Positions 41,001 to 59,747 of a stretch of 64,000 bases of DNA are shown piece by piece. Positions within the stretch are counted from its first letter, which is position 1. Every line of letters starts with the position of its first letter. The position numbers and the translations under genes were made by a program. The stretch covers positions 1 to 64,000 of the forward strand of contig DF236975.1 of the NCBI GenBank assembly GCA_000708835.1, read 5' to 3'. The notes beneath the pieces are model-generated. The model was not told where the DNA came from. It made no database searches and worked only from the letters and a program-made list of their open reading frames with translations. Source of the DNA: Klebsormidium nitens. Its lineage: Eukaryota > Plantae > Klebsormidiophyceae.

Positions 41001-44000
41001 GAGCTTGCCTAGTGTCGTCCCTTGCTTTGTCTCTTGCCAGACCCCAGGACGTCGCACCTTAAATGTCCTCATCGAAGTCAAGTAAAGTCAGTAAGTGTCT
41101 GCTTACCGCGCTTGAGCTCTTCTGTTGCCCTCCCGCTTCTCTTGCTGTGCTTCAGGACGGTCCCTCGATCGCCCTCTTTCGAAAGGTATTTGCTCCGCGT
41201 TGCTCGATCGGTTCGTAAGTTTCAAAGTGTTTTGTACTCTCTGACCTGCTAACGTTTTCTATTTCCAGTGGGGCATGCTTTGTCCGTCCGACACTCCCGA
41301 AGGCGAGGCGTGCGGCCTGGTGAAGAACCTGGCGCTCATGACGCACGTGACCACCGACGAAGAGGAAGGACCCATCGTTAGGCTGGTAAGACGATTCCGC
41401 TTTTCCTTGACCTTTTTGGACGCCTGCAAAGGTCACTTTGAGAAATTGACTGCTCGCAAAATGTTAAGGATCTGGGATGAAAGCGCGGAGTAGCGTTCAT
41501 GGAAAACCTCACGAAAGGTCCAATCTAACACATAAGCCGCACTCGAGGGTTGCGGTGTTTGCTCGCTTCTCCTAAGCCCTGTGTTGAGTCGTCATATTCA
41601 ACTCTGTAACTGTTTCATATCAGCGGATGAACTGGGAAAATATCCAATTTTCTTTATATTCCGTGATGCCCGCAACGCACTCCATTTGCGACGTTCTTCA
41701 ATCAACTCGAAGTTTCGCCCCCTATTGACGGCAGGCCTCCTTTCATTCAAGACCCCGCAGCTTTACAACCCGGCTTTGGAGATGTTCACGACAGGCTTCA
41801 GCGGTGGGCCTGGAAGGGCTGATGACACAACAATACCCGCATCTGTTGACCAGCATTCTGACCCGGCCCCTTTCTTGCGATGGCAGGCTTCAACGCTGGG
41901 GGTGGAAGAGCTGGCGCTGCTGTCCGGCGCGGAGCTCCACGCGCCCAGCAGCTACCTCGTCTTCCTCAACGGAAGCATCTTAGGTGTACATAGAAAACCG
42001 CACAAGCTCGCAGGTAAGACGCCTCCGCTAAGAAAGGCAAAAAAGGTATCGGTGGACCTTCTTGAAAGTGTACGTTGTATTCAGCCTCGCATAGCAACTG
42101 CATTCGTCCCTGGTGTAATGCAGTTTCTCAAAGCTTTGAAAGCGAATGAGAATTCCCCTTGATGCCAGGCCCTTCTTGCTCAAGCTGATAGTACATGAAG
42201 TCCCATATGACTGCTTTCCTATTTAGGTCCCTCCAAATCCCTTCAAATCCGGAACGGAACATGCAATATTTCACCCTCTCGTGATAGCTCCGAGATCCGG
42301 TTCGCACGTTGTAAAGTAACCCCTGACAATCTCGGGAAAGACTATTACAGCCTTTACTCCCCCTCCCCAGATGCCATTCGGAGGCTCCGGCGTGCGGGTA
42401 GAGTAGGAGAGTTCGTGTCCGTCCATGTACATACCGGACAGAAGTGCGTCTACATCGCGTCGGACGGCGGCCGCGTGTGCCGCCCGCTCGTGATTGCGGA
42501 CAAGGGGGTTTCGCGCGTCAAGGCGCACCATATGGAGGAGTTACGGGAGGGGTATCGCACGTTTGACGACTTTTTGAGGGAGGGGCTGGTGGAGTATCTC
42601 GACGTGAACGAGGAGAATAACAGTCTGGTGAGTTGTTCTGGGGTTTCGGATTAGGCAGTCTGGGCAGATTCTTTTCTAAACCGTATGGAGGAATTTCGGG
42701 AGGGGTACCGCATGTTTTACGACTTTCTGAGGGAGGGGCTGGTGGAGTATCTCGACGTGAACAAGGAGCTGATGTCCGTTGAGTCATTTTCTCATCGCAC
42801 GAGTTCTCAGTCTTGCTGCCTGGGCGGTGAAGGCTTTCTGTCTTTTTACATCTTTATGGAAGGGCTATTATGCGGCTACCAAACATGGTCAGAGAAGGTC
42901 CAAGTTGGACAGCGGAGTGTGAATTAGAATGTGGAGATGGGGCCATGCTTTCTAGACGGCTTTCTAGACGATACTGGGCTTTAAGAGCGGGGAGAGTGGT
43001 TCTGCTTTTACTGACGCTCGACCAACGCCCCCTTTTTGCATCTGCGCAGATTGCCATGTACGAATGCGACGCCGGCCCAGACAACACCCACATCGAGATC
43101 GAGCCGTTCACAATCCTGGGGGTCTGCGCCGGGCTGATTCCATACCCCCACCACAACCAGTCTCCGCGAAACACGTACCAGTGCGCTATGGGCAAGCAGG
43201 CGATGGGCAACATAGCGTATAACCAGCTGTACCGGATGGATACGCTATTGTACCTCCTGGTATACCCGCAGAGGCCGTTGCTGACCACCAAGACGATCGG
43301 CCTGGTAAGGCGCAGACAACAGGTTGCGCTTGCATCTACTTATCCGGCTTTCGCATCCCCGTTCCGAGGGCATCGCTGCCTGGCTTTGCAAGAAGTTTGT
43401 TTCATTTTAGGCGGCCACGAAGGTGCATCAAGAACTGTCTGATCCTCAAAGCGGACCCAATCGACCAAGCGTTTTGGCTGTGTCATCTCTTGGGACCATC
43501 CTCGAACAGATTATTGCAAGCGATAATCGAGCTGTTAAGCTTCGCAGACCCACTTCAAGGTATCAAGAATATGTGATTGAGTCAAGATGATATCTGGAAA
43601 GGAATACATTCCAACGCAAGGGAAGCGCTGAAGAAATCCAGTGCATGCGGTTCGATGCTTAAAGAGCGCCTCAATCGCTTTCGGCAGCCCCGATCCTTAA
43701 CCCGTCCACAGAGAAGCCTCGACAGAGCCGGTGAATGCCAGGATGTCACGTCGGCTGCTGGTGTCATGCACTGAGCTGATCATCTGAAAGTGACGATCTT
43801 GGAAAAACAAGCCGATCCGCACCCCTCCGTGCAATTGGCCTTGACAGATCAGTGGGTTATTACAGTTAGCTTCAGTCTCTCAACAGGGCTTTGCTCACCT
43901 TTTTCCGCAGATTGGCTTCGACAAGCTAGGTGCGGGGCAGAACGCCACCGTGGCCGTCATGAGCTACAGCGGGTACGACATCGAAGACGCGATCGTGATG

Positions 44001-46465
44001 AACAAGGCGTCCCTCGACCGCGGGTTCGGCCGGTGCATCGTCATCCGCCGCTATGCAACGTCCCTCCGAAAATACGCGAACCGCACGCAGGATCGGATCG
44101 TCGCGCCCCCGGGGGGATCCCTCGGCGCGAGCCAACGGTACGCGCTGCTCGACGCCGACGGGATCGCGGCGGCCGGAGAAATGATTCGCCCGGGTGACGT
44201 GTACGTGAATAAGCAGAGCCCGAAGAACACGCGCGAGATGGACGTGCCGAACCCCGCCAACCTGCCGGACAGGTAAGGACCGCCGTCCGAAAGCGTCCGA
44301 ATTGCCTGGTCACTTTGTCTGCATCTCCGATATGTTTCCTCGTGACTTGAGTTGTATGTGACCGCTCAAGAGTGGGTCCACCTTGTGTACGCAACGCTTC
44401 GGCCAATATCGGAACGAGCCTCGACTCTCCAAAAGCGTCTGCAAAGTGGTTCTCTGTATATCAGAGCGCTGTGGTCGAGAGTAGAGGACCCGAAAAGGAA
44501 TTGCCGATGTTGGACCGGATCATGCGGCGCGTCGTAGATGGTATCCACCTTGAAGGACCTTGAAGGCGCTTCATCGAAGACATCACCGCTGTCTCTACAT
44601 TTGAACAAGATAGAGAATTCTATCCAGGACCCATTTGAGTACAGGAACTCAGTCTTAAACTGTTCTTTCCTTTGCAGCTTCTTCAAGGCCACCCCCCAAA
44701 CGTACAAAGGCCCCGCCGGCGAGACCGCTGTCGTGGACAAGGTGCTGATCACCAGCAACGACGAGAACCAGTTCGTCGTCAAGGCCTTAGTTCGCCACAC
44801 GCGGCGCCCGGAAGTGGGCGACAAGTTTTCGAGCCGGCACGGGCAGAAGGGCGTGTGCGGGACGATCGTGCAACAGGAGGACTTTCCGTTCTCGGAGCGA
44901 GGGATCTGCCCCGACCTCATTATGAACCCGCACGGCTTCCCCAGGTCCGTGACCACCTTTTCCTCAGGGAGCTCTTCCAGCTAGTTCTGGATGCTTGGCT
45001 CCACTGCTGTCTGTTCGCATCCCCGTTTTGCTTGCGTCCGTGCCTGTGTTTGCACTGCTTTTGTGACGGCAGAAAGTAGGATAAAGGTAGGCAAACAGTA
45101 GGCGCGACAGGAGGCGTGCTACAACCCAGTCTCCCGCTTTGCACTTTGCGTGCCTGAGAGGCGTCACAGTTCCTGAGGTTTAGAACGACTTTGAAAGTCT
45201 TGACGTTGCTGTCATTCTGGTTCTTACCAGACCGGACAACTGGCTCTGAGCGGCTTTCTTTGTTGTCACATTCCGCGAAGGTCGGATTTTTGTTCGAAGC
45301 AAGCTACTTTCAACCTGTCTTCTGGAATCGAAAAGCATAATATGTATTTAAAGAGGGTACAACGCAGTACGCAGGACAATCAACGGAGATTACCAGCTTT
45401 TGCAAAGTGGCCGACCTTGAGTAACCCGATTCCCTTGTCCTCTTTCGCAGCCGCATGACTGTCGGCAAAATGATCGAGCTCCTGGGCTCTAAGGCGGGCG
45501 TCTGCAGCGGCCGGTTTCACTACGGCACCGCGTTCGGTGAACCGAGCGGTCACGCCGACACCGTCGAAGCGATTAGCGCGACTCTGGTGCAGCACGGGTT
45601 TAGTTACAGCGGCAAGGACTTCCTCTACTCGGGGATCAGCGGGGAGCCGCTCCAGGCGTACATATTCATGGGGCCGGTGTATTACCAGAAGCTGAAGCAT
45701 ATGGTGAGGAGTGTTTGGTGGCCTTTTGCTTTTGCTACAAATGGATGCTTCTTCGAAACCTTACGGCGGATGCTTCTTCGGAACGTTACGGCCGAAAAAT
45801 TCGGTGAGACTGCTTCTTGGAACAATAAAATTAATCGATTGCGTGCTCATCACCTCCTTCTTGTTTGAGAAAACGAAGGCGTGGCAGATTTTGCCGGAAA
45901 TAGCTGCCAGCTGGCTAGCTGTGCTCCTCAGCTCGCTTCCGTTTATTGATCAGGTCGATCTTGAGCTTTGGCTTTCTTGTCGCTCAGGGTTTGCGGGCCT
46001 GCTTCGTCCATTTGGCCAACTTATCAATGCGGAGTTCATATGACCTGAGCCCCCTGGAAATTGAAGTCTCAATCTTACACATCCTTGTACCCCCAGGTTC
46101 TCGATAAGATGCACGCGCGCGCAAAGGGCCCCCGTGTCGTCCTCACGAGACAACCGACCGAGGGGCGCAGCCGCGACGGCGGGCTCCGGCTGGGGGAGAT
46201 GGAGCGCGACTGCCTCATAGCTTATGGGGCGAGCATGATGATCTTGGAGCGGCTTATGATCTCCAGCGATCAGTTCGAGGTGCAAGTGTGCACGAAATGC
46301 GGGTTGCTAGGGTACTTCGACAAGAAGCTGAAAGCCGGCTTCTGCTCGTACTGTAAGAATAGCCAGAATATAGCCACGATGAAGCTGCCGTACGCGTGTA
46401 AGCTGCTGTTCCAAGAGCTGCAGTCGATGAACATCGTGCCAAGGCTAAACCTGACAGAAGCGTGA
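35037..46465 (+). CDS. NRPC2: DNA-directed RNA polymerase III second-largest subunit
   Basis: About 18 exons. Motifs [132 protein letters not shown], ends [24 protein letters not shown]. Confidence 0.97.
39385..39519 (+). pseudogene. Diverged duplicate of the 5' half of the RPC2 exon starting at 39615, including its acceptor
   Basis: Lies exactly 200 bp upstream. [17 protein letters not shown] vs [18 protein letters not shown] 1-nt insertion is followed by TAA at 39517. Confidence 0.75.
42685..42768 (+). repeat. Intronic duplicate of RPC2 exon segment 42532..42615
   Basis: 153-bp offset. [28 protein letters not shown] vs [28 protein letters not shown]. Confidence 0.9.
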
Positions 46466-51312: not shown

Positions 51313-53000
51313 GTTCAATCTTCACTTTCTTGACAGTGACTTGAAGCTGATTTGCTTCCGTGGCTGCAGATGCAACTAATATATAATGCATCTACTGAAG
51401 AGTGTGAGAACAGAGCATCATAATCTTGAGTTGGTAGCTTCATAGAATGAAGCCACCGGCGCTCCCGTCAATCGATATATAGGATTTGATGATCAGACTA
51501 CCGATCGAGGCCGGCGGCGCGGGCGGCTTACCTGGCCCGCACCGTAATGCTTCAGGGTTTGGGTTTGGTCGAGTCTTCACGAAGTGACACCTGGCAACTT
51601 GGCGACACGCCACCAAAACCCGACACTTGGCAGCGTCTGATTGCTTGAAAGTGTCCGCCATGGCGCCTCACTTTCCCCTTGCCGGTGCAGGAGCATCTTC
51701 TTTCCTGGCGGCTGCAGCCGGGCCCCAGCAGGGCTGCAGCAACATCATCATTGGTTCCTGCACATCATTTCTTCCAGCCTTACATCAACATTGAAACCTT
51801 GACAGCCCCTGCATCTGTTTGTGAGCACGTCAGCCTAGCATTAGCGAGCGGCCATGCCACCAGCTGATTGCCTCTTGGCTCAAACAACTTCCAATCAAAT
51901 AAGATTATGCTTTGGAGTTATTGACAGACTACCGCGATCAAATCAGGCATGCTCAAATGTCTGTTGCACACTTAGGAGGCCTCTGAAGTTGGTTGGTAGT
52001 TGCAAGCTTCGCTCTGGTGCATTTGACCTGCATAAAACGGGCCAACTTCGGTTGCACAGCAGGACGTTTGGACAAAAGCAGCAGGTGAAGGGGACAAGGA
52101 GCATTGTGGGACAGAAAAGTAACATGGGAGCCTCAGAGGCTGCGGAGGTAAGCTTGAATAAGGGGTTAATAAACCGTGCCGAAAGAGAGAGTTGCAATGT
52201 CCTGCAGACTCTACCTTCAATATCAGCTGTAATGTGGACACGTGCTCATATGTCGACGTCTCTAGTAGCGTAAACACTTTTTTTTAATATATGAATTTCG
52301 TCAATCTCTGTTACATGTGTAGCAGTACCAGCACTCCACCTGGTACGCTCAGATCGTGCACTTGAGAATTTCTCTCTCTTTGTTCGGAGGATTATGCATA
52401 CTACTATGCAATTTTGAACAAAAAAGTTAGAATCTTCCAACTCATGGCAGTTGGGCAGTAAGGGCGCCTTCTTCTTTTCGATTCAGACTTGCATCCTTCT
52501 AGATCGTTGTTGGGTAATGTCCCGAAGTAACGTGGAGTTGATCGGTACGCAGCCTGATGCTGGCTGGCTTTCAGTGTGTTCTCAAGATTTTTGCATTACC
52601 ACTCTCGTCAAACCTTTGCTTTTTAAAACCAATCAAAGTGCTCCTTACCGCAACGCCCTTGAAAGCATCCTTGATGAAACCTTCTGAAATGTTTTAACTG
52701 CTAGATGTTGTTGCGATAACTCTGGCACATCTGTGGAAAAGGAGGAGATATTGACCTTCGAATCTAAACCCACCTGCTCTTCCCATAGGGGTGGAAGCTG
52801 AAAGCCTAGAATCTGATCTCGAAAACAGCAGCTACGTCCCTCCTCTCACGTTGGCCTTATCTGGTTGGCAATCAGCCGACATCTCTTCTTTTGGACGTCA
52901 TCTATCTGACTTGGAAGGATGCAAGGATGTTGAGTGGTAAACTCAATTTGATGATTGGGCAGGCTATATTCAAAAAGCTTAAAACCACATTCCTGTGCAG

Positions 53001-56000
53001 ACGGATCGCAACATGGCCATCGGGGCTGGGGTGACGCCCCTCTTCCCTGGGTTCAACGACCTATACTACAGTGACACCGCGACATGCGAGTCGAGGTTTC
53101 GGAATGGATACTTCGACGAGTCGGACAAAGACCCGTTGGCGTTTATGACGCTGCGAAACCAGGTTCAGTTGAGCACGTATGGGAACAGCATTGGGAAGAA
53201 CATGAAGGATCTGTATCGGTTTGTCAGCGACCACTTGAGAGGTGAGTTTGCAAAATTGACTAAGCTGTCCAACTGGAACAAATCCCTTGATTCTGCTCTG
53301 GCCCTTCACTTCAAAGCTTGGCTTGCATTGGTTGAGCTGAAAGTACGCTACTTTAGTGATGTAGATAGTGCTGGGAGCTAGACGGAAAAGGCAAGTAGTC
53401 ATGCAAGTAGAACATGCTGCCACCGGTAGGGCTCATCTTGTTCTGAAATAGGAGATATAGTTGCTCTCCAGCCACCAGTTCCTATAGCCAATGAAAGCAC
53501 TTGAGATTGGAGTTCTATTAGGGATGAATAGCTGCATTAGACTGAACATTTTGATGGGAGGGTAAAGACTCAGGAGAAGTATGTGCAAGCAAGACTTCGA
53601 GCTGACTCTTCTGCCTTGCAGGCGCCATTGGCAGTGTCCACTTGCTGCCGATCTACCCCTCCTCTGGGGATGGCGGTTTTGCACCGATAGCTTATACGAG
53701 CGTCGACCCGGAGATGGGCTCATGGGATGACGTCAAAACGATTTCGGACCGCTACGATCTGTGCGTGGAATTCATGGTCAACCACATATCGCCGGAATCG
53801 GACCAGTTTAAGGACTTTATCCAGAAAGGGGATGACTCGGAGTTTGCGGAGATGTTCATTGACTGGGACAAGTTCTGGCCCGAAGGTGAACTACATTGGC
53901 CATTCTTTCAATTCCTGAATGATCCGGACTCTTTCTGTACCACGTAGTTGAGAATGCAGGTGTAGCAATCTTCTTAGGCAAGCTTCCTGTTGAGCGCAAG
54001 GGAGTCACTCGTGGAGACTATACTTGTGGTATTGAACCAAATAAAGGAGGCGTACTTGATTGATCTTGAAAAGCTGAAGGTGAAGTCTCTCCCGAGTCCG
54101 TTTGCTTCGATCGAATTGGAGGGAGGGCTTAAATATCTGTCGAGGCAGACTCATCAAGACGTTTTTCAGCCTGAACCTTACGGGCTGACTCAAGTTCGGT
54201 CAAACTTCGTGTGCCTGATCAAGGTGTGACAGCAAAGAGTGCAGATCCGATGATGAAGCTAGAGCTTTTGGTTCCTTTTCAGGACGTCCGACCAAGGAGG
54301 ACCTAGCGCGAATCCGGACGCGCAAGGGAGAGGCGCCCGTCTTGGAGGTAGAGATGGCGGACGGGAGCAAGCGGCGGGTCTGGTGCACCTTTGGCCCGCA
54401 GCAGATAGACATCAACCCAATGACTCCCGCGGGTAAGAAAAGTTTCTCTCGTCGTCATGGGGAGGATTGGAAGGGGCGGTCGTGGCTGTTCGTTTGGTGA
54501 GAACTTCTCTCACTTACAATTTGCTCGAGAAGCCTGGCGCTCGCAAGTCGCTAACGGAAAGAGTATTTTGGATGAGTTCAGTTGGGTGTGCCTCAGTCGG
54601 GGGACGGAAGCAAGCGCGAGCTGATGCTCGTTTTGGGCTTGCTTCATCCCCTGATCTCTAACCGAAAGACAGAAGATTGAACACTCCCGTTCCGTCGGGT
54701 TTTCAACGTCGAGGGAACTGATACCAAGCTCTGCTATTGGGAAACGGAGGGCAAAGGAGCCTGCCTGATTCTGACGAACGTTACCTACTGCTGACGTGCG
54801 GGTACGCTTTTTGTATCGTGCAGGTTGGAAGTTCGTGCACACGTCCATCTGCAGCCTTTACAACAAGGGGGCACGTGTCATCCGCCTGGACGCCTTTGGG
54901 TACTTCACCAAAAAGCTGGGAACGCGCTGCTTCTTCGAGGTGAGGAGGCTCCTTTTGGCAAAGTACCCCGCCTATGGTGGTAAATTGTAACTGCGGCTCG
55001 GGGTAGAGATCCGCTGTCAGGCGTTCTGCTTTCTCTCAGAATGACCTTATCCGGTAGTCTGGGCGCTTCGACGAAGTTTATACAGAGAGCGATTGATAAG
55101 AGGCCTGCGCTGGGCGGGGGGGAGGGAGGCCAAGCCACCGACCGACATTTTCACGAGCCCGCCCGCATAGAAGACAATGAGTCATGCTGGACTGCGGTTT
55201 TCCCGGAGCGGCCGTTTAAAGTTCAAAGGCGACATATGCTTGTGGTGTTCCACTGCTTGGATCGCTTTGAATGGTTATTGTTCGGACCTTCTGATTGTTA
55301 CTTCAAGGAATGGCGCTTGCGGCTGGTCATGATTGTCTTTTCGACCGTATGGACCGACAAGTGGCGATAATTTCAATGGTCACTTTCACCTATGGTGCCA
55401 CACGTCATCGGTGTCAGATAGACTGTACGGTTCGCCTGACCGCGGATGCTGCGCGTGCAGGAGCCGGAGAGCTGGGAGCTGTTGGAGAACATCGAGAAGC
55501 TTGTAGAGGAACGGGGCATCAGGTACGCAAAATCTTCGCCAGTCTGAAGATTTCAGGTTTGGTTGAGCAGCGGACCCCTGTCCTTTGCAGGGTTGAATGC
55601 CATGACAGAACCGCGCCTGTCAAACCAGACTCCTGGTGCTGAGTACCTGGTCCAGACAGAGCAAATCCTTGTAGATTCCATCAAACTCGAACGGTTGTGG
55701 TTGCGCAGCGCTACCTAAAACATGACCCTGGCCAGCTAACACCCGGCAGCTTCTGAGTTCTCTTAAGTTCAACGGCCGCTTTGAGAAGCTGAGACTCCGG
55801 GCGCTCGATTGCAAGCTTCTGGAATCAAGAGATACGCCGCTCTGTGTCTCGGCTCTGCATTCCCAGCCGCTTGTGCAAACGATCACAAAATTAACTCGCT
55901 TTACGAGTTCTTCGATAGTTCGATCTTTATCTGACGATCGCACGGTCCAGATTGCTTTGCGAGGTGCACGAGGAGTACGAGACGAACCTGAAGATCGCGG

Positions 56001-57410
56001 AGCGCGGCTACTGGGTGTACGACTTCGCTCTCCCGCTCCTAGTTCTCCACGCCTTCCACTTCCGGACTGCCGAAAATCTGAGACATTGGCTCCACATCTG
56101 CCCGCGGCGGCAGATCACCGTTTTGGATACGCACGACGGGATGGGGATTGATGACATTTCGGGACTGGCTACGGTGAGCGGCATGCGTACTTTGCAGTCT
56201 GGATCTGGTCTCGTGTGCTCGCGCTTTCGTTTGGCTGGTTGGTCTTATTACCCGGACAGCCTGATAGTGCCGTCGAAACCTTTCATGGCTGTAGAGTGCG
56301 GATGATAATATGGGGGACAGGAAGCGCCGACATTCTTAAATCAAATGGAAGACCTCTGCTTCGTGGGACCTCGTAACGGTCTCTTCGTTTGTGCGTCTTT
56401 GCCTGGGTGTGCCAGTTCTTTCGCCGTCCCCCTTCTTTGTAAGAGCCTTTTGTCGTTTTTCACCCGCTTCCAGTGGATAGAGATTCTTTGGAAGATCTCG
56501 ATGCCGTTGCGTCATTGACAAATTACTTGCCGTCAACTTTGCGAGCGGGGGCTCCTTCATGAATGCCGATCACGTAGTGCGCTTCGCTTCCAAAAACATC
56601 CCAATCCGTCGGCATCATTGCAGTCAGGCTGAAACATGCACATCTCAGAAAGGCACGACCAGTCAGCACCGAGAGAGACTAGTGAACCCCCTGAGGCCGT
56701 GCAAAAGCTTCTTTCTGTTTGCTGACCATCACTTCGCTTCGCAGGTGTGCGATACGGAGGAATTGAAAAAGATTGCGTCCGAGGCGCAGTCCAAAAACCT
56801 TGCGTCTATCACGCCGAAGTTCCTGTACGACCCGGAAAAGTCGGTCTACGTGTCCAACCCGCACCAAATCAACTGTACATACTACTCCGCGTGCGAGCAA
56901 GAGGACCATCTATACCTTTTGGCGCGCGCCATACAATTCTTTTGCCCGGGGATCCCGCTAGTGTACTACGTCGGGATGCTGGCCGGCAGTAACGACCTGT
57001 GCCTGGCGAAGAGAACCGGCAGCGGACGGGAGATAAACCGGCACCGGTACTCGTACGAGCAGGCGGTCGAAGAAGTGCAAAGACCGGTCGTGCAGACTCT
57101 GCTAGAAATGTGCCGGTTCCGGAATCAGCACCCCGCGTTTCGCGGGCGGATGCACGTGGAAGATGACGTGCCGGGCCACGTGCTGGTGGTGACGTGGCAG
57201 AACGGGGAGGCGCGCGCGACGCTGACCGTCGATTTCCAGACCAAGGCGTACAACATAGCGCATACTGGGCACGATCATAAGGAGGGGGACGAGTTGCGGG
57301 TTGTGCGGTTTGAGAGGGGTGGGGAGGGGTCTCACGAGGACAGCATTCTGGGTTTGGATACGACCGTGCGAATGGCGCCAGAGCGGGGGGAGATGGTTGT
57401 CTCGGCCTGA
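53001..57410 (+). CDS. GH13_18 glycoside phosphorylase (sucrose / sucrose-6'-phosphate phosphorylase-like)
   Basis: Exons 53001-53241, 53622-53885, 54283-54432, 54824-54939, 55461-55522, 55951-56173, 56745-57410, all GT-AG and in phase. NQVQLSTYGNSIG, VHLLPIYPSSGDGGFAP, FMVNHIS, VWCTFGPQQIDIN, IRLDAFGY (nucleophile), CEVH (acid/base), TVLDTHDG, HQINCTYYSA, ARAIQFFCPGIPLVYYVGMLAG, REINRH. Confidence 0.93.
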
Positions 57411-58029
57411 AGGAAGCATAAAGTATTGCAGGCGCGCGCCGCAACCGTCAGGTCGATTGGCCTTATTGTATTTATCTATTCTCGAATCGCAAGTATTGAA
57501 TACTTTCAGTTAAAGCAGAGGAAGCATGAGTTGGGCAGTTGTGCCTGTGTATGAACAGTTGGTGGTCGATAAAAGCTAACGGCGCTTCTGCGAATTCTTG
57601 GTCAAAAAGGAGAGTATAAAGCATGCAGATTTGGACAGCGTGAACGATTCATCAATGTATTATCAATTGACGTACATTGTTCCTTAGCCGGTTGTAACAC
57701 ACACCATCGACAATTGATCCTAAGTAGCATGAAGCTGGGAATGAGTTCATCGACGAGAATATTGGGACGCTAATTGAATTGTATAAGGGCATAAACATCA
57801 CCTCTAGACTTCTCTTTTCCTGCGGCCATGTGAAAACAGAAATTTTCACGTCTGCCGTACGACTTCAGAAGCCCCTCCCTCTTCAAGGTGGGGCAAGGGG
57901 CACCGCCTACATAAAATGGCACACCGTCTACATGAAATGAGGGGGGATACGAAAATCGGACGAAAATCTGCAAGCGGCAAATGGTACACTGCTAAGCAAT
58001 TTATCACATTGAAGTTCAACAAACTCAGC

Positions 58030-59747
58030 TTATGAGAGCTTGCCTCTGCGCCAACCTACTGTAAACCCCCAGACCGAAGAAGCCATGTTCAGACACAACA
58101 ACCCCGACCCTGGGAACCTCTGCTTCTTCAGCTTGAGACGATTAAGACTTTTCAGCTTGACCAGGTGTGGCGCCAGAAACGCTGCGCCCTCATTCGAAAA
58201 GCTGTTACTTGCCAAATCTAATGAAGTTAGCTCTGTAAGCTTGCCTAATTCTGGCGCCAAGGCCGCTGCTCCCCCATCCTTGAAGGCGTTCCACCCCAGG
58301 TCAAGGTAGGTGAGCTTCGTGAGCTTGCCTAACTCAGGCGCCAAGACCACCGCGCCAGCATCATTGATGTAATTCACCCCCAGGTCAAGGTACCTTAGCT
58401 CTGTGAGTTTGCCTAACACTGGCGCCCAATGCGCCGTGGATTCTTTCTCCTCGTCCTCGGATTTTTCCTCCTCGTCCTCTCTCGGTTCTCTCCAGGTGTT
58501 TTTGCGCAGGATGAGTGAGGTGAGCCCAGTGAGCTTGCCCAACTCAGGGGCCAATGCCTCTACACCCTCATCGTCAAACCAGTTACGTCCTAGATTGAGA
58601 TACGTGAGCTTCGTAAGCTTGCCCAACATAGGCACTAAATCCACGGCTTCTCCAAAGTCATTCTCCCATAGATTCAGTGAGGTAAGCCCACCGAGTTATC
58701 CCACCTCAATCAGCTCTTGCATTTCATGGTCAATTAGATTGCCCAGAGCGTTTTCGCTCAGAATCAGACTTGTAAGCCCCTCATTCTTGCCTAATCCACG
58801 GGCCATGTGCGCTGCCCCTACAGCGGAAAGACGTGTGTCCCGCAGATCCAATGAGGTGAGCCCAACCAGATTCCCTAACTCAACCAGATTTTCTTCCCTC
58901 TCGTTGAGTATGTTTTCGCTAAGAATCAGAGTAGTCAGCCCCGTATTCTTGCCCAACCCGCGCGCCATGTACACTGCCCCTAAAGTGGAGATTTTTGTGT
59001 TGCTGAGATTCAACATAGTAAGCCCAGTGACCTTGCCTAGCCCGGACGCCACGGCGTCAGCGCCCTCGTCCTTGAGACTAGTCCCATGTAAATCCAGGAC
59101 TGTGAGCTTAGCGAACTGCCCCAGCTCAGGCGCCAAAAGCTGCCAGAAACCCTTGTGGTCGCTGCTGGGATACTCAGGGTCATAGCACCTTAATGGTGAA
59201 GACGACCTCGGTCGAACAAGAAGACCCCCCAAGCTAAGAGACCTTAGACCTTGCATATTGTGCAGCAGAAACAAAATCTTCTGAACCTTACAGCTATCAC
59301 TTGGGGTACACTCATCAGGATCCGCCACCAGACGAAAGTGCGAGCTGGTAGATTCAATTTCACTTAAAGCCTCCTGATCGGCAGCATGAGTGAACAGCGT
59401 CCAGCTCTTGCTATTGACACTCTTGTAGATATTCCTGAGCTTCTTGCTCGTGGATGCGAATGCGACCTCATCCCCACCGCCATCTTTTGCTACTTCCCCC
59501 ATAATTCTTCCGAGCACGTCGTCTGGCAGACTTTCAATCTGCACAACACAGTCCGTAGATCCAATCAGATAACTTACCCGAACAAGAAGGAGAATGGTAC
59601 TGAGCCCTTCTGAACAACAGCCGGCAACCTAGGGATCGGAATATCCACAAGCAAGCACCACAAGCACCACACTGAGCACCACTTAGTGCTTACCTCACTC
59701 TCCTCGTCGACCCCACTCGACAGATGCCTTCCTTCCGTGGGCGCCAT
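58030..59747 (-). pseudogene. F-box-like + ribonuclease-inhibitor-type LRR protein with an in-frame TAA
   Basis: Exon 1 59747-59694 (MAPTEGRHLSSGVDEESE) splices to IESLPDDVLGRIM at 59538. About 11 LRRs of ~28 aa (LGKLTxLTxLxLxxN). TAA at 58698-58696 with the same frame continuing in LRRs. Confidence 0.75.

Follow-up and report, generated by a model that had tools for sequence, protein, structure and literature searches.

The 64,000-nucleotide stretch of Klebsormidium nitens DNA analyzed here (contig DF236975.1, in its full length called the window) carries a complete gene for a glucoside phosphorylase of subfamily GH13_18, in seven exons at positions 53013 to 57410 of the plus strand, as established by reading the sequence from 52800 to 57700 and by script. 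We consider it likely that the product is a functional retaining α-glucoside phosphorylase and that its gene descends from a bacterial, Firmicutes-like gene that was gained once by the green lineage and later duplicated. The original prediction, made from the letters of the DNA, had described the seven exons, the three catalytic acids, and the two acceptor loops, and it was correct in all of these down to their coordinates. Its proposal of a bacterial-type GH13_18 enzyme domesticated in a photosynthetic eukaryote is also borne out, through the introns, the eukaryotic neighboring genes, and purifying selection. The acquisition can no longer be called a novelty, since a 2026 paper already describes a "sucrose phosphorylase" of bacterial origin in K. 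nitens NIES-2285, Coccomyxa, and Sphaeropleales (PMC13315243, Nat Commun 2026) and a K. nitens paralog of that name is already in NCBI. What our analysis would add to that paper is an argument from shared introns, an acceptor-loop signature, and a second Klebsormidium paralog, the first two of which were not found in its main text as far as this was available.

The coding sequence comprises 1710 nucleotides (569 codons plus TGA) in an intact frame, and all six introns are of the GT..AG type, 380 to 571 nucleotides long and in phases 1, 1, 1, 0, 2, and 0. All searches with the window gene were made exon by exon, and a contiguous 556-amino-acid ortholog, P0152, which crosses all six junctions of the window model without a gap, served as the full-length proxy. 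The NCBIfam sucrose phosphorylase profile TIGR03852 matches six of the seven exon translations in colinear order (profile positions 1-27, 30-116, 118-161, 169-204, 227-298, and 333-468), and the bits of the exons total approximately 442 against a cutoff of 334.4, a rough sum of separate matches. The sole Pfam match of a single exon was a subthreshold one to Alpha-amylase, with exon 2. When exons 2, 3, 6, and 7 were searched against the PDB, the significant matches were to GH13_18 phosphorylases only, headed by the sucrose phosphorylases 7qqj, 1r7a, and 7znp, the sucrose-6F-phosphate phosphorylase TtSPP (6s9v), the glucosylglycerol phosphorylase 7xdq, and IcSPP (6s9u); those of exon 2 reached 7.9e-30, and its list adds weak matches (E of about 1e-4) to other GH13 enzymes. 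Our literature search found no publication on 7QQJ/7QQI. Exon 1 encodes an alga-specific N terminus of approximately 46 residues followed by the first residues of the GH13_18 core (LRNQVQLSTY) and matches TIGR03852 weakly, while exon 7 also encodes the C-terminal beta domain and a Klebsormidium-specific tail of approximately 45 residues.

In a maximum-likelihood tree of the GH13_18 subfamily, the window gene groups among the characterized clades. Its catalytic triad of Asp, Glu, and Asp (RLDAFGY, CEVH, and THDG) falls in the same alignment columns as that of all bacterial members, and the residues of subsite -1 are intact. It is very likely, by analogy with the family, that the double-displacement mechanism yielding α-glucose 1-phosphate (G1P) has been retained. 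The Asp of IRLDAFGY would attack C1 of the glucoside to form a covalent glucosyl-enzyme, with the Glu of CEVH acting as the acid/base and the Asp of THDG stabilizing the transition state, and phosphate would then release the α-G1P.

The ortholog P0152 is an uninterrupted open reading frame on a 2063-nucleotide JGI transcript contig (L010), and a 125-kb genomic contig from the same group of organisms (L002) aligns to this transcript in seven blocks, with breaks at approximately residues 65, 153, 203, 241, 262, and 337, which are exactly the six intron positions of the window. The ortholog is thus transcribed and spliced as the window model predicts. Between the window and L002 the exons alone align, at 72 to 85% DNA identity, and we saw no synteny between the two beyond the gene. 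For the pooled exons of the window gene and the ortholog, the proportions of nonsynonymous and synonymous differences were 0.158 (pN) and 0.635 (pS), which gives a ratio of nonsynonymous to synonymous substitution rates (dN/dS) of approximately 0.13; the window gene is under purifying selection. As a separate observation, intron 6 of the ortholog (L002:6392-6915) contains four degenerate tandem copies of the last part of exon 6, of approximately 55 nucleotides each, spaced approximately 150 nucleotides apart, with 80 to 88% identity; by the blastn coordinates, each stops at the point where exon 6 ends at its 3' side. The end of exon 6 in the window also matches one of these copies, which might act as decoys or as alternative donor sites.

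Exon 7, in an exhaustive HMMER search, and P0152, in a word search, gave nearest relatives that were all green algal, and there was no land plant homolog among the matches of either. One of these relatives was the ortholog (P0001/P0152, from JGI samples) at approximately 70% identity. The other algal relatives were the NCBI entry P0162 ("sucrose phosphorylase [Klebsormidium nitens]"), which is the nearest of those that carry a name, and proteins of three Coccomyxa species, Myrmecia bisecta, Trebouxia, Apatococcus, Tetradesmus obliquus, and Scenedesmus sp., as well as an MMETSP transcript. After the algae came Paenibacillus-type bacterial proteins of approximately 480 amino acids at approximately 48% identity.

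An indication of the age of the gene comes from mapping the proteins of annotated relatives back onto their loci. All six introns of the window gene match, in both position and phase, introns of the K. nitens paralog, of Coccomyxa subellipsoidea C-169 (6 of its 9 introns), and of M. bisecta (6 of 13), and three of the six are shared by T. obliquus. Given approximately 1500 possible combinations of site and phase, the probability that such matches arose by chance is negligible, and together with the monophyly of the algal sequences they lead to a single ancestral gene that already carried introns. This points to one ancient acquisition and not a recent one. By this reading of the sequences, the ancestral gene either predates the split of chlorophytes and streptophytes or moved between algae with its introns in place. 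A bacterial gene of the sucrose phosphorylase type would thus have reached the green lineage a single time, acquired introns there, been passed down to Klebsormidium, Trebouxiophyceae, and Sphaeropleales, and at some later point been duplicated in the Klebsormidium lineage.

Our careful tree of the subfamily (maximum likelihood under LG+C20+F+G4, 50 rows, with the window represented by exon 7 alone) places all algal sequences in one clade (support 100/100), in which the window exon groups with P0152 (98/92) and the two join P0162 (100/99). The algal clade, the Paenibacillus-type sucrose phosphorylases, and a bacterial pair (P0007 and P0063, with MEKLYQ in loop A) form a larger clade supported at 99/97, and the donor would appear to have been a Firmicutes-like bacterium. 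Bacteria that carry the TtSPP-like His-Gln in loop A fall outside this clade in the best tree, beside a GGoP-like sequence. Forcing them together with the algae costs 14 log-likelihood units and is not rejected by the approximately unbiased (AU) test (P = 0.086). The loop A His of the algae is probably convergent with that of TtSPP, judging from this topology. P0007 and P0063 are the closest bacterial pair not of the sucrose phosphorylase type, and P0007 is the bacterial protein grouping nearest to the algae. With respect to P0007 itself (L008:4418-7461, on a metagenome scaffold), the gene lies directly after a second GH13 gene, its locus is flanked by two modules of sugar ABC transporter and two-component genes, and its MEKLYQ is not a sucrose phosphorylase motif; a GTDB scan with P0007 returned one metagenome-assembled genome of Firmicutes, at 44% identity.

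The annotated K. nitens protein P0162 is not the product of the window gene. It is only 40 to 74% identical to the window exons, exon by exon, and is encoded on a separate scaffold, DF237122.1, of which only the paralogous exons match the window. The window therefore holds a second Klebsormidium paralog. The annotated model of P0162 skips 120 nucleotides after residue 292 (L001:9361-9480, DF237122.1), for which we found no GT/GC..AG solution, and this skip is either a noncanonical intron or an annotation patch. In the Klebsormidium proteins, approximately 36 to 46 residues precede the core and show no obvious transit peptide character, and the window protein is probably cytosolic, going by this N terminus. 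The chlorophyte homologs P0153, P0155, P0163, and P0177 have N-terminal extensions of 90 to 200 residues and low-complexity C-terminal tails of up to approximately 340 residues; these are absent from the Klebsormidium copies and may reflect different targeting or regulation.

Where the algal enzymes depart from their bacterial relatives is in the two loops of the acceptor site. In the PDB alignment the window segment NPHQINCTYYSA stands opposite DVHQINCTYYSA of TtSPP (6s9v) and DIYQINCTYYSA of the sucrose phosphorylase 7qqj, and the His encoded at 56862 aligns with His344 of TtSPP, so that the original prediction's comparison, a His at the Tyr position shared with TtSPP, holds. The original prediction was also right that the Asp preceding this position is replaced, and a noncanonical specificity is possible. 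In loop B, TtSPP Arg134 corresponds to the second Arg of IRTRK, the one next to the Lys (by way of P0152 and the multiple alignment), and the first Arg stands where sucrose phosphorylases have a Tyr, the equivalent of Tyr132. Compared with the Bifidobacterium adolescentis enzyme BaSP, Tyr132 is replaced by Arg, Asp342 by Asn, Leu343 by Pro, and Tyr344 by His, while Arg135, Tyr196, His234, Gln345, and Arg399 are kept. With these four replacements and the loop B Arg retained, the aglycone pocket is predicted to have been rebuilt relative to that of bacterial sucrose phosphorylases and to be more basic.

These features are not peculiar to the window copy. Among 20 full-length algal homologs, surveyed by multiple alignment and motif count, loop A reads Y-x-x-x-[P/A/V/D]-H-Q, with His-Gln in all 20 and Pro-His-Gln in 16, and D-x-Y-Q in none; loop B reads [IV]-R-T-R-K-P, with RTRK in 18 of them. 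The window copy, with VSNPHQ in loop A and IRTRKG in loop B, retains both consensus motifs and would be the paralog that keeps the alga-wide acceptor site, while the motifs have drifted in the ortholog P0152 (IRCRNN and IDHQ) and in the annotated paralog P0162 (IITHQG and AVHQ). The corresponding motifs are NLDIYQ and IYKRKP in the nearest bacteria and G[FV]D[AV]HQ and IFLR[KR]P in TtSPP-like bacteria. In the literature the loop A motif is N(L/V)D(I/L/V)YQ for sucrose phosphorylases, GFDVHQ for TtSPP, KxxYYQ for the strict sucrose-6F-phosphate phosphorylases, and VGAIYQ for GGoP, and GGaP is marked by a Glu in loop A together with (T/S)ETN at beta-5 (PMC7178133). The window copy has neither the sucrose phosphorylase motif nor GFDVHQ, whose Gly, Phe, and Asp it lacks; KxxYYQ, of the Ilumatobacter/Ruminococcus type, is missing as well, and in place of the GGoP and GGaP markers the window copy has PHQ in loop A and CEVH at beta-5. 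The clade-wide combination of x-P-H-Q with R-T-R-K fits none of the five described GH13_18 motif classes. Pro-His-Gln is also found in loop A of P0017, a "sucrose phosphorylase" of Oerskovia jenensis (WP_387486714.1; ASMPHQINATFAA), an actinobacterial member of the BaSP-like clade; it stands well apart from the algae in the tree and is an independent bacterial instance of the substitution.

As matters stand, the natural substrate is most likely sucrose or sucrose-6F-phosphate (Suc6P), about equally so, and with either the enzyme would connect the sucrose that serves the alga as osmolyte with G1P and the metabolism of starch, at no nucleotide cost. An ordinary sucrose phosphorylase (EC 2.4.1.7), which converts sucrose and phosphate to G1P and fructose, is a serious possibility, if short of a probable one. 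In the PDB, the ortholog scores highest against the sucrose phosphorylase 7qqj (508.9 bits, versus 421.4 for TtSPP), the nearest bacterial homologs are Paenibacillus proteins of the sucrose phosphorylase type, at approximately 48% identity and joined to the algae at 99/97, and the equivalents of Gln345, the loop B Arg, His234, and Tyr196 are kept. Sucrose remains a substrate of TtSPP, which carries this His too (PMC7178133), and algal transcripts named sucrose phosphorylase change along with genes of sucrose metabolism (PMC6691101 and PMC13315243); in K. dissectum such a transcript rises on desiccation (PMC6691101). However, the diagnostic N(L/V)D(I/L/V)YQ is missing from 20 of 20 algal proteins, and the residues replaced include the equivalents of Asp342 and Tyr132, which in BaSP matter for fructose affinity, and of Tyr344, which matters for phosphate affinity (PMC7178133).

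We give the same weight to a Suc6P phosphorylase (EC 2.4.1.329-like), again as a credible candidate that stops short of probable, which would interconvert Suc6P and phosphate with G1P and fructose 6-phosphate (F6P). Green algae form Suc6P naturally on the way to sucrose, and the reaction could run in the direction of Suc6P if a sucrose-phosphate phosphatase pulls, giving sucrose from starch-derived G1P without UDP-glucose. In TtSPP, Arg134 and His344 bind the 6F-phosphate (PMC6720575), and both have equivalents here that are conserved throughout the algal clade; the extra loop B Arg in place of Tyr, with the Lys kept, would make the pocket more cationic, and the AU test leaves room for a common clade of the algae and the His-Gln bacteria. 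Against this stand the lack of a full GFDVHQ, in which TtSPP keeps the Asp that the algae have lost, the absence of KxxYYQ, and the position of the TtSPP-like bacteria outside the 99/97 clade, which makes the His look convergent. The original prediction of a loop of the sucrose-6'-phosphate type holds for the His, to which the Arg134 equivalent can be added, but not for the motif, which is an alga-wide x-P-H-Q, and the best tree does not group the algae with TtSPP-like bacteria.

A different glucoside altogether (such as a glucosyl-polyol, glucosylglycerate, or glucosylglycerol made by terrestrial algae), or activity as a transglucosidase or hydrolase, would amount to a new GH13_18 specificity and seems to us unlikely. 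In its favor, x-P-H-Q with R-T-R-K lies outside the five described motif classes, and new loop A motifs have repeatedly revealed new specificities in this subfamily (PMC7178133). The carriers include Klebsormidium, Trebouxia, Coccomyxa, Apatococcus, and Myrmecia. Most of these genera are aeroterrestrial or lichen algae with a high content of compatible solutes. On the other side, neither the GGaP markers ((T/S)ETN and the loop A Glu) nor VGAIYQ, the mark of GGoP, is present, the present data point to no candidate substrate, and the logic of gene neighborhoods is inapplicable in eukaryotes. The idea that the gene is a bacterial contaminant, was transferred recently into this one lineage, or is a pseudogene in decay, for which only the bacterial-type family and its patchy eukaryotic distribution speak, is refuted by the six GT-AG introns common to chlorophyte genes in position and phase, the eukaryotic neighbors, a GC content like that of the surroundings, the intact frame of 569 codons, the dN/dS of 0.13, and the 100/100 monophyly of the algae, and we give it almost no credence.

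Several points weigh against the picture of a functional phosphorylase acting on sucrose or its phosphate that we favor. The transcript support comes from a metatranscriptome ortholog of approximately 70% identity and not from the window copy, and the word search with P0152 gave P0162 (59% identity) and not the full-length product of the window copy. In the literature searched we found no assay of any enzyme of the algal clade. A plain sucrose phosphorylase is difficult to reconcile with the loss of the Asp342, Tyr344, and Tyr132 equivalents, and a plain TtSPP type is difficult to reconcile with the incomplete GFDVHQ motif and a tree placement elsewhere. The original prediction had named nesting in a widespread, already characterized eukaryotic clade as a result that would count against it; the green-algal clade in which the gene nests is indeed widespread and has been described, but it is not biochemically characterized, which bears this condition out in part.

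Our findings do not overturn current knowledge, and the headline claim of a eukaryotic, horizontally acquired GH13_18 enzyme has been published. To this the window copy adds a conservative paralog, clean support for a single ancient gain, and a more precise description of the clade-wide pocket. The shared introns push the gain to, or close to, the ancestor of chlorophytes and streptophytes, favoring one old gain and many losses over several recent transfers. Klebsormidium, a land-dwelling green alga, is an early-branching relative of land plants. It accumulates sucrose and thereby survives drying and cold (PMC6691101). A phosphorylase that interconverts G1P with sucrose, or with the phosphorylated precursor of sucrose, would offer a short and energy-sparing route between starch and the osmolytes. 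The most interesting version of a new specificity, if true, would be a Suc6P phosphorylase that couples starch-derived G1P and F6P and so makes or drains the sucrose precursor without UDP-glucose, as an ancient route of osmolyte control in the green lineage that land plants have lost. The conserved pocket marks a whole clade of putative sucrose phosphorylases, as databases name them, and such a clade could yield a new biocatalyst. That this green-algal clade, with its x-Pro-His-Gln and Arg-Thr-Arg-Lys, represents a new subfamily specificity, the first in eukaryotes, is a tentative idea that we find rather doubtful.

The surroundings of the gene (Table 1) are eukaryotic in character. Upstream lies an ordinary housekeeping gene for an RNA polymerase subunit, and directly downstream, on the opposite strand, are two long open reading frames with leucine-rich repeats. 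The GC content of the phosphorylase gene resembles that of the flanking sequence, and an Rfam scan of the whole window gave no match.

Table 1. Exons of the GH13_18 gene and neighboring features in the window
Feature	Position	Strand	Content
RNA polymerase gene	about 43950-46465	+	Second-largest subunit; several exons
Exon 1	53013-53241	+	ATG at 53013; ends in phase 1; aligned with P0152 residues 1-64
Exon 2	53622-53885	+	Subsite -1 residues (SSGDGGFAP, MVNHIS); TIGR03852 1.5e-34
Exon 3	54283-54432	+	Loop B (domain B), RIRTRKGEAP
Exon 4	54824-54939	+	Nucleophile Asp, GAC 54889-54891, within IRLDAFGY
Exon 5	55461-55522	+	Short linker, 20 codons plus 2 nucleotides; matches P0152 residues 242-261
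Exon 6	55951-56173	+	Acid/base Glu, GAG 55961-55963 (CEVH); transition-state stabilizer Asp, GAC 56135-56137 (THDG)
Exon 7	56745-57410	+	Loop A YVSNPHQINCTYY, His codon 56862-56864; Arg399 equivalent (GREINRH); stop TGA 57408-57410
Leucine-rich repeat frames	58030-59544	-	Two open reading frames (204 and 282 amino acids); RNI-like repeats (LGKLTxLTxLDL...)

Among the known systems, BaSP of B. adolescentis (1r7a/2gdu), the reference for the mechanism, is the more distant, at 341 bits to the ortholog. The equivalents of its Asp192, Glu232, Asp290, Arg190, Tyr196, His234, His289, Gln345, and Arg399 are all present in the window gene, whereas Tyr132, Asp342, Leu343, and Tyr344 have given way to Arg, Asn, Pro, and His. 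TtSPP of Thermoanaerobacterium thermosaccharolyticum (6s9v) shares the GH13_18 fold, the triad, the His-Gln at the Tyr344 position, and the Arg at Arg134, but its loop A is GFDVHQ where the window has VSNPHQ, with the Asp lost, its loop B is FLRR where the window has IRTRK, and bacteria like it do not belong to the 99/97 clade in which the algae fall, with an AU P value of 0.086 for a joint grouping. The highest overall similarity is to the sucrose phosphorylases of Firmicutes (7qqj, Paenibacillus), which reach approximately 48% identity and, against the ortholog, 508.9 bits, with subsite -1 identical; they differ in having NLDIYQ and IYKRKP in place of the algal x-PHQ and IRTRKP, and the algal proteins have additional N- and C-terminal extensions and are encoded by genes with introns. 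The described green-algal sucrose phosphorylase clade (PMC13315243) is the same gene family, and the window gene lies inside it (100/100), as a second Klebsormidium copy beside the annotated P0162.

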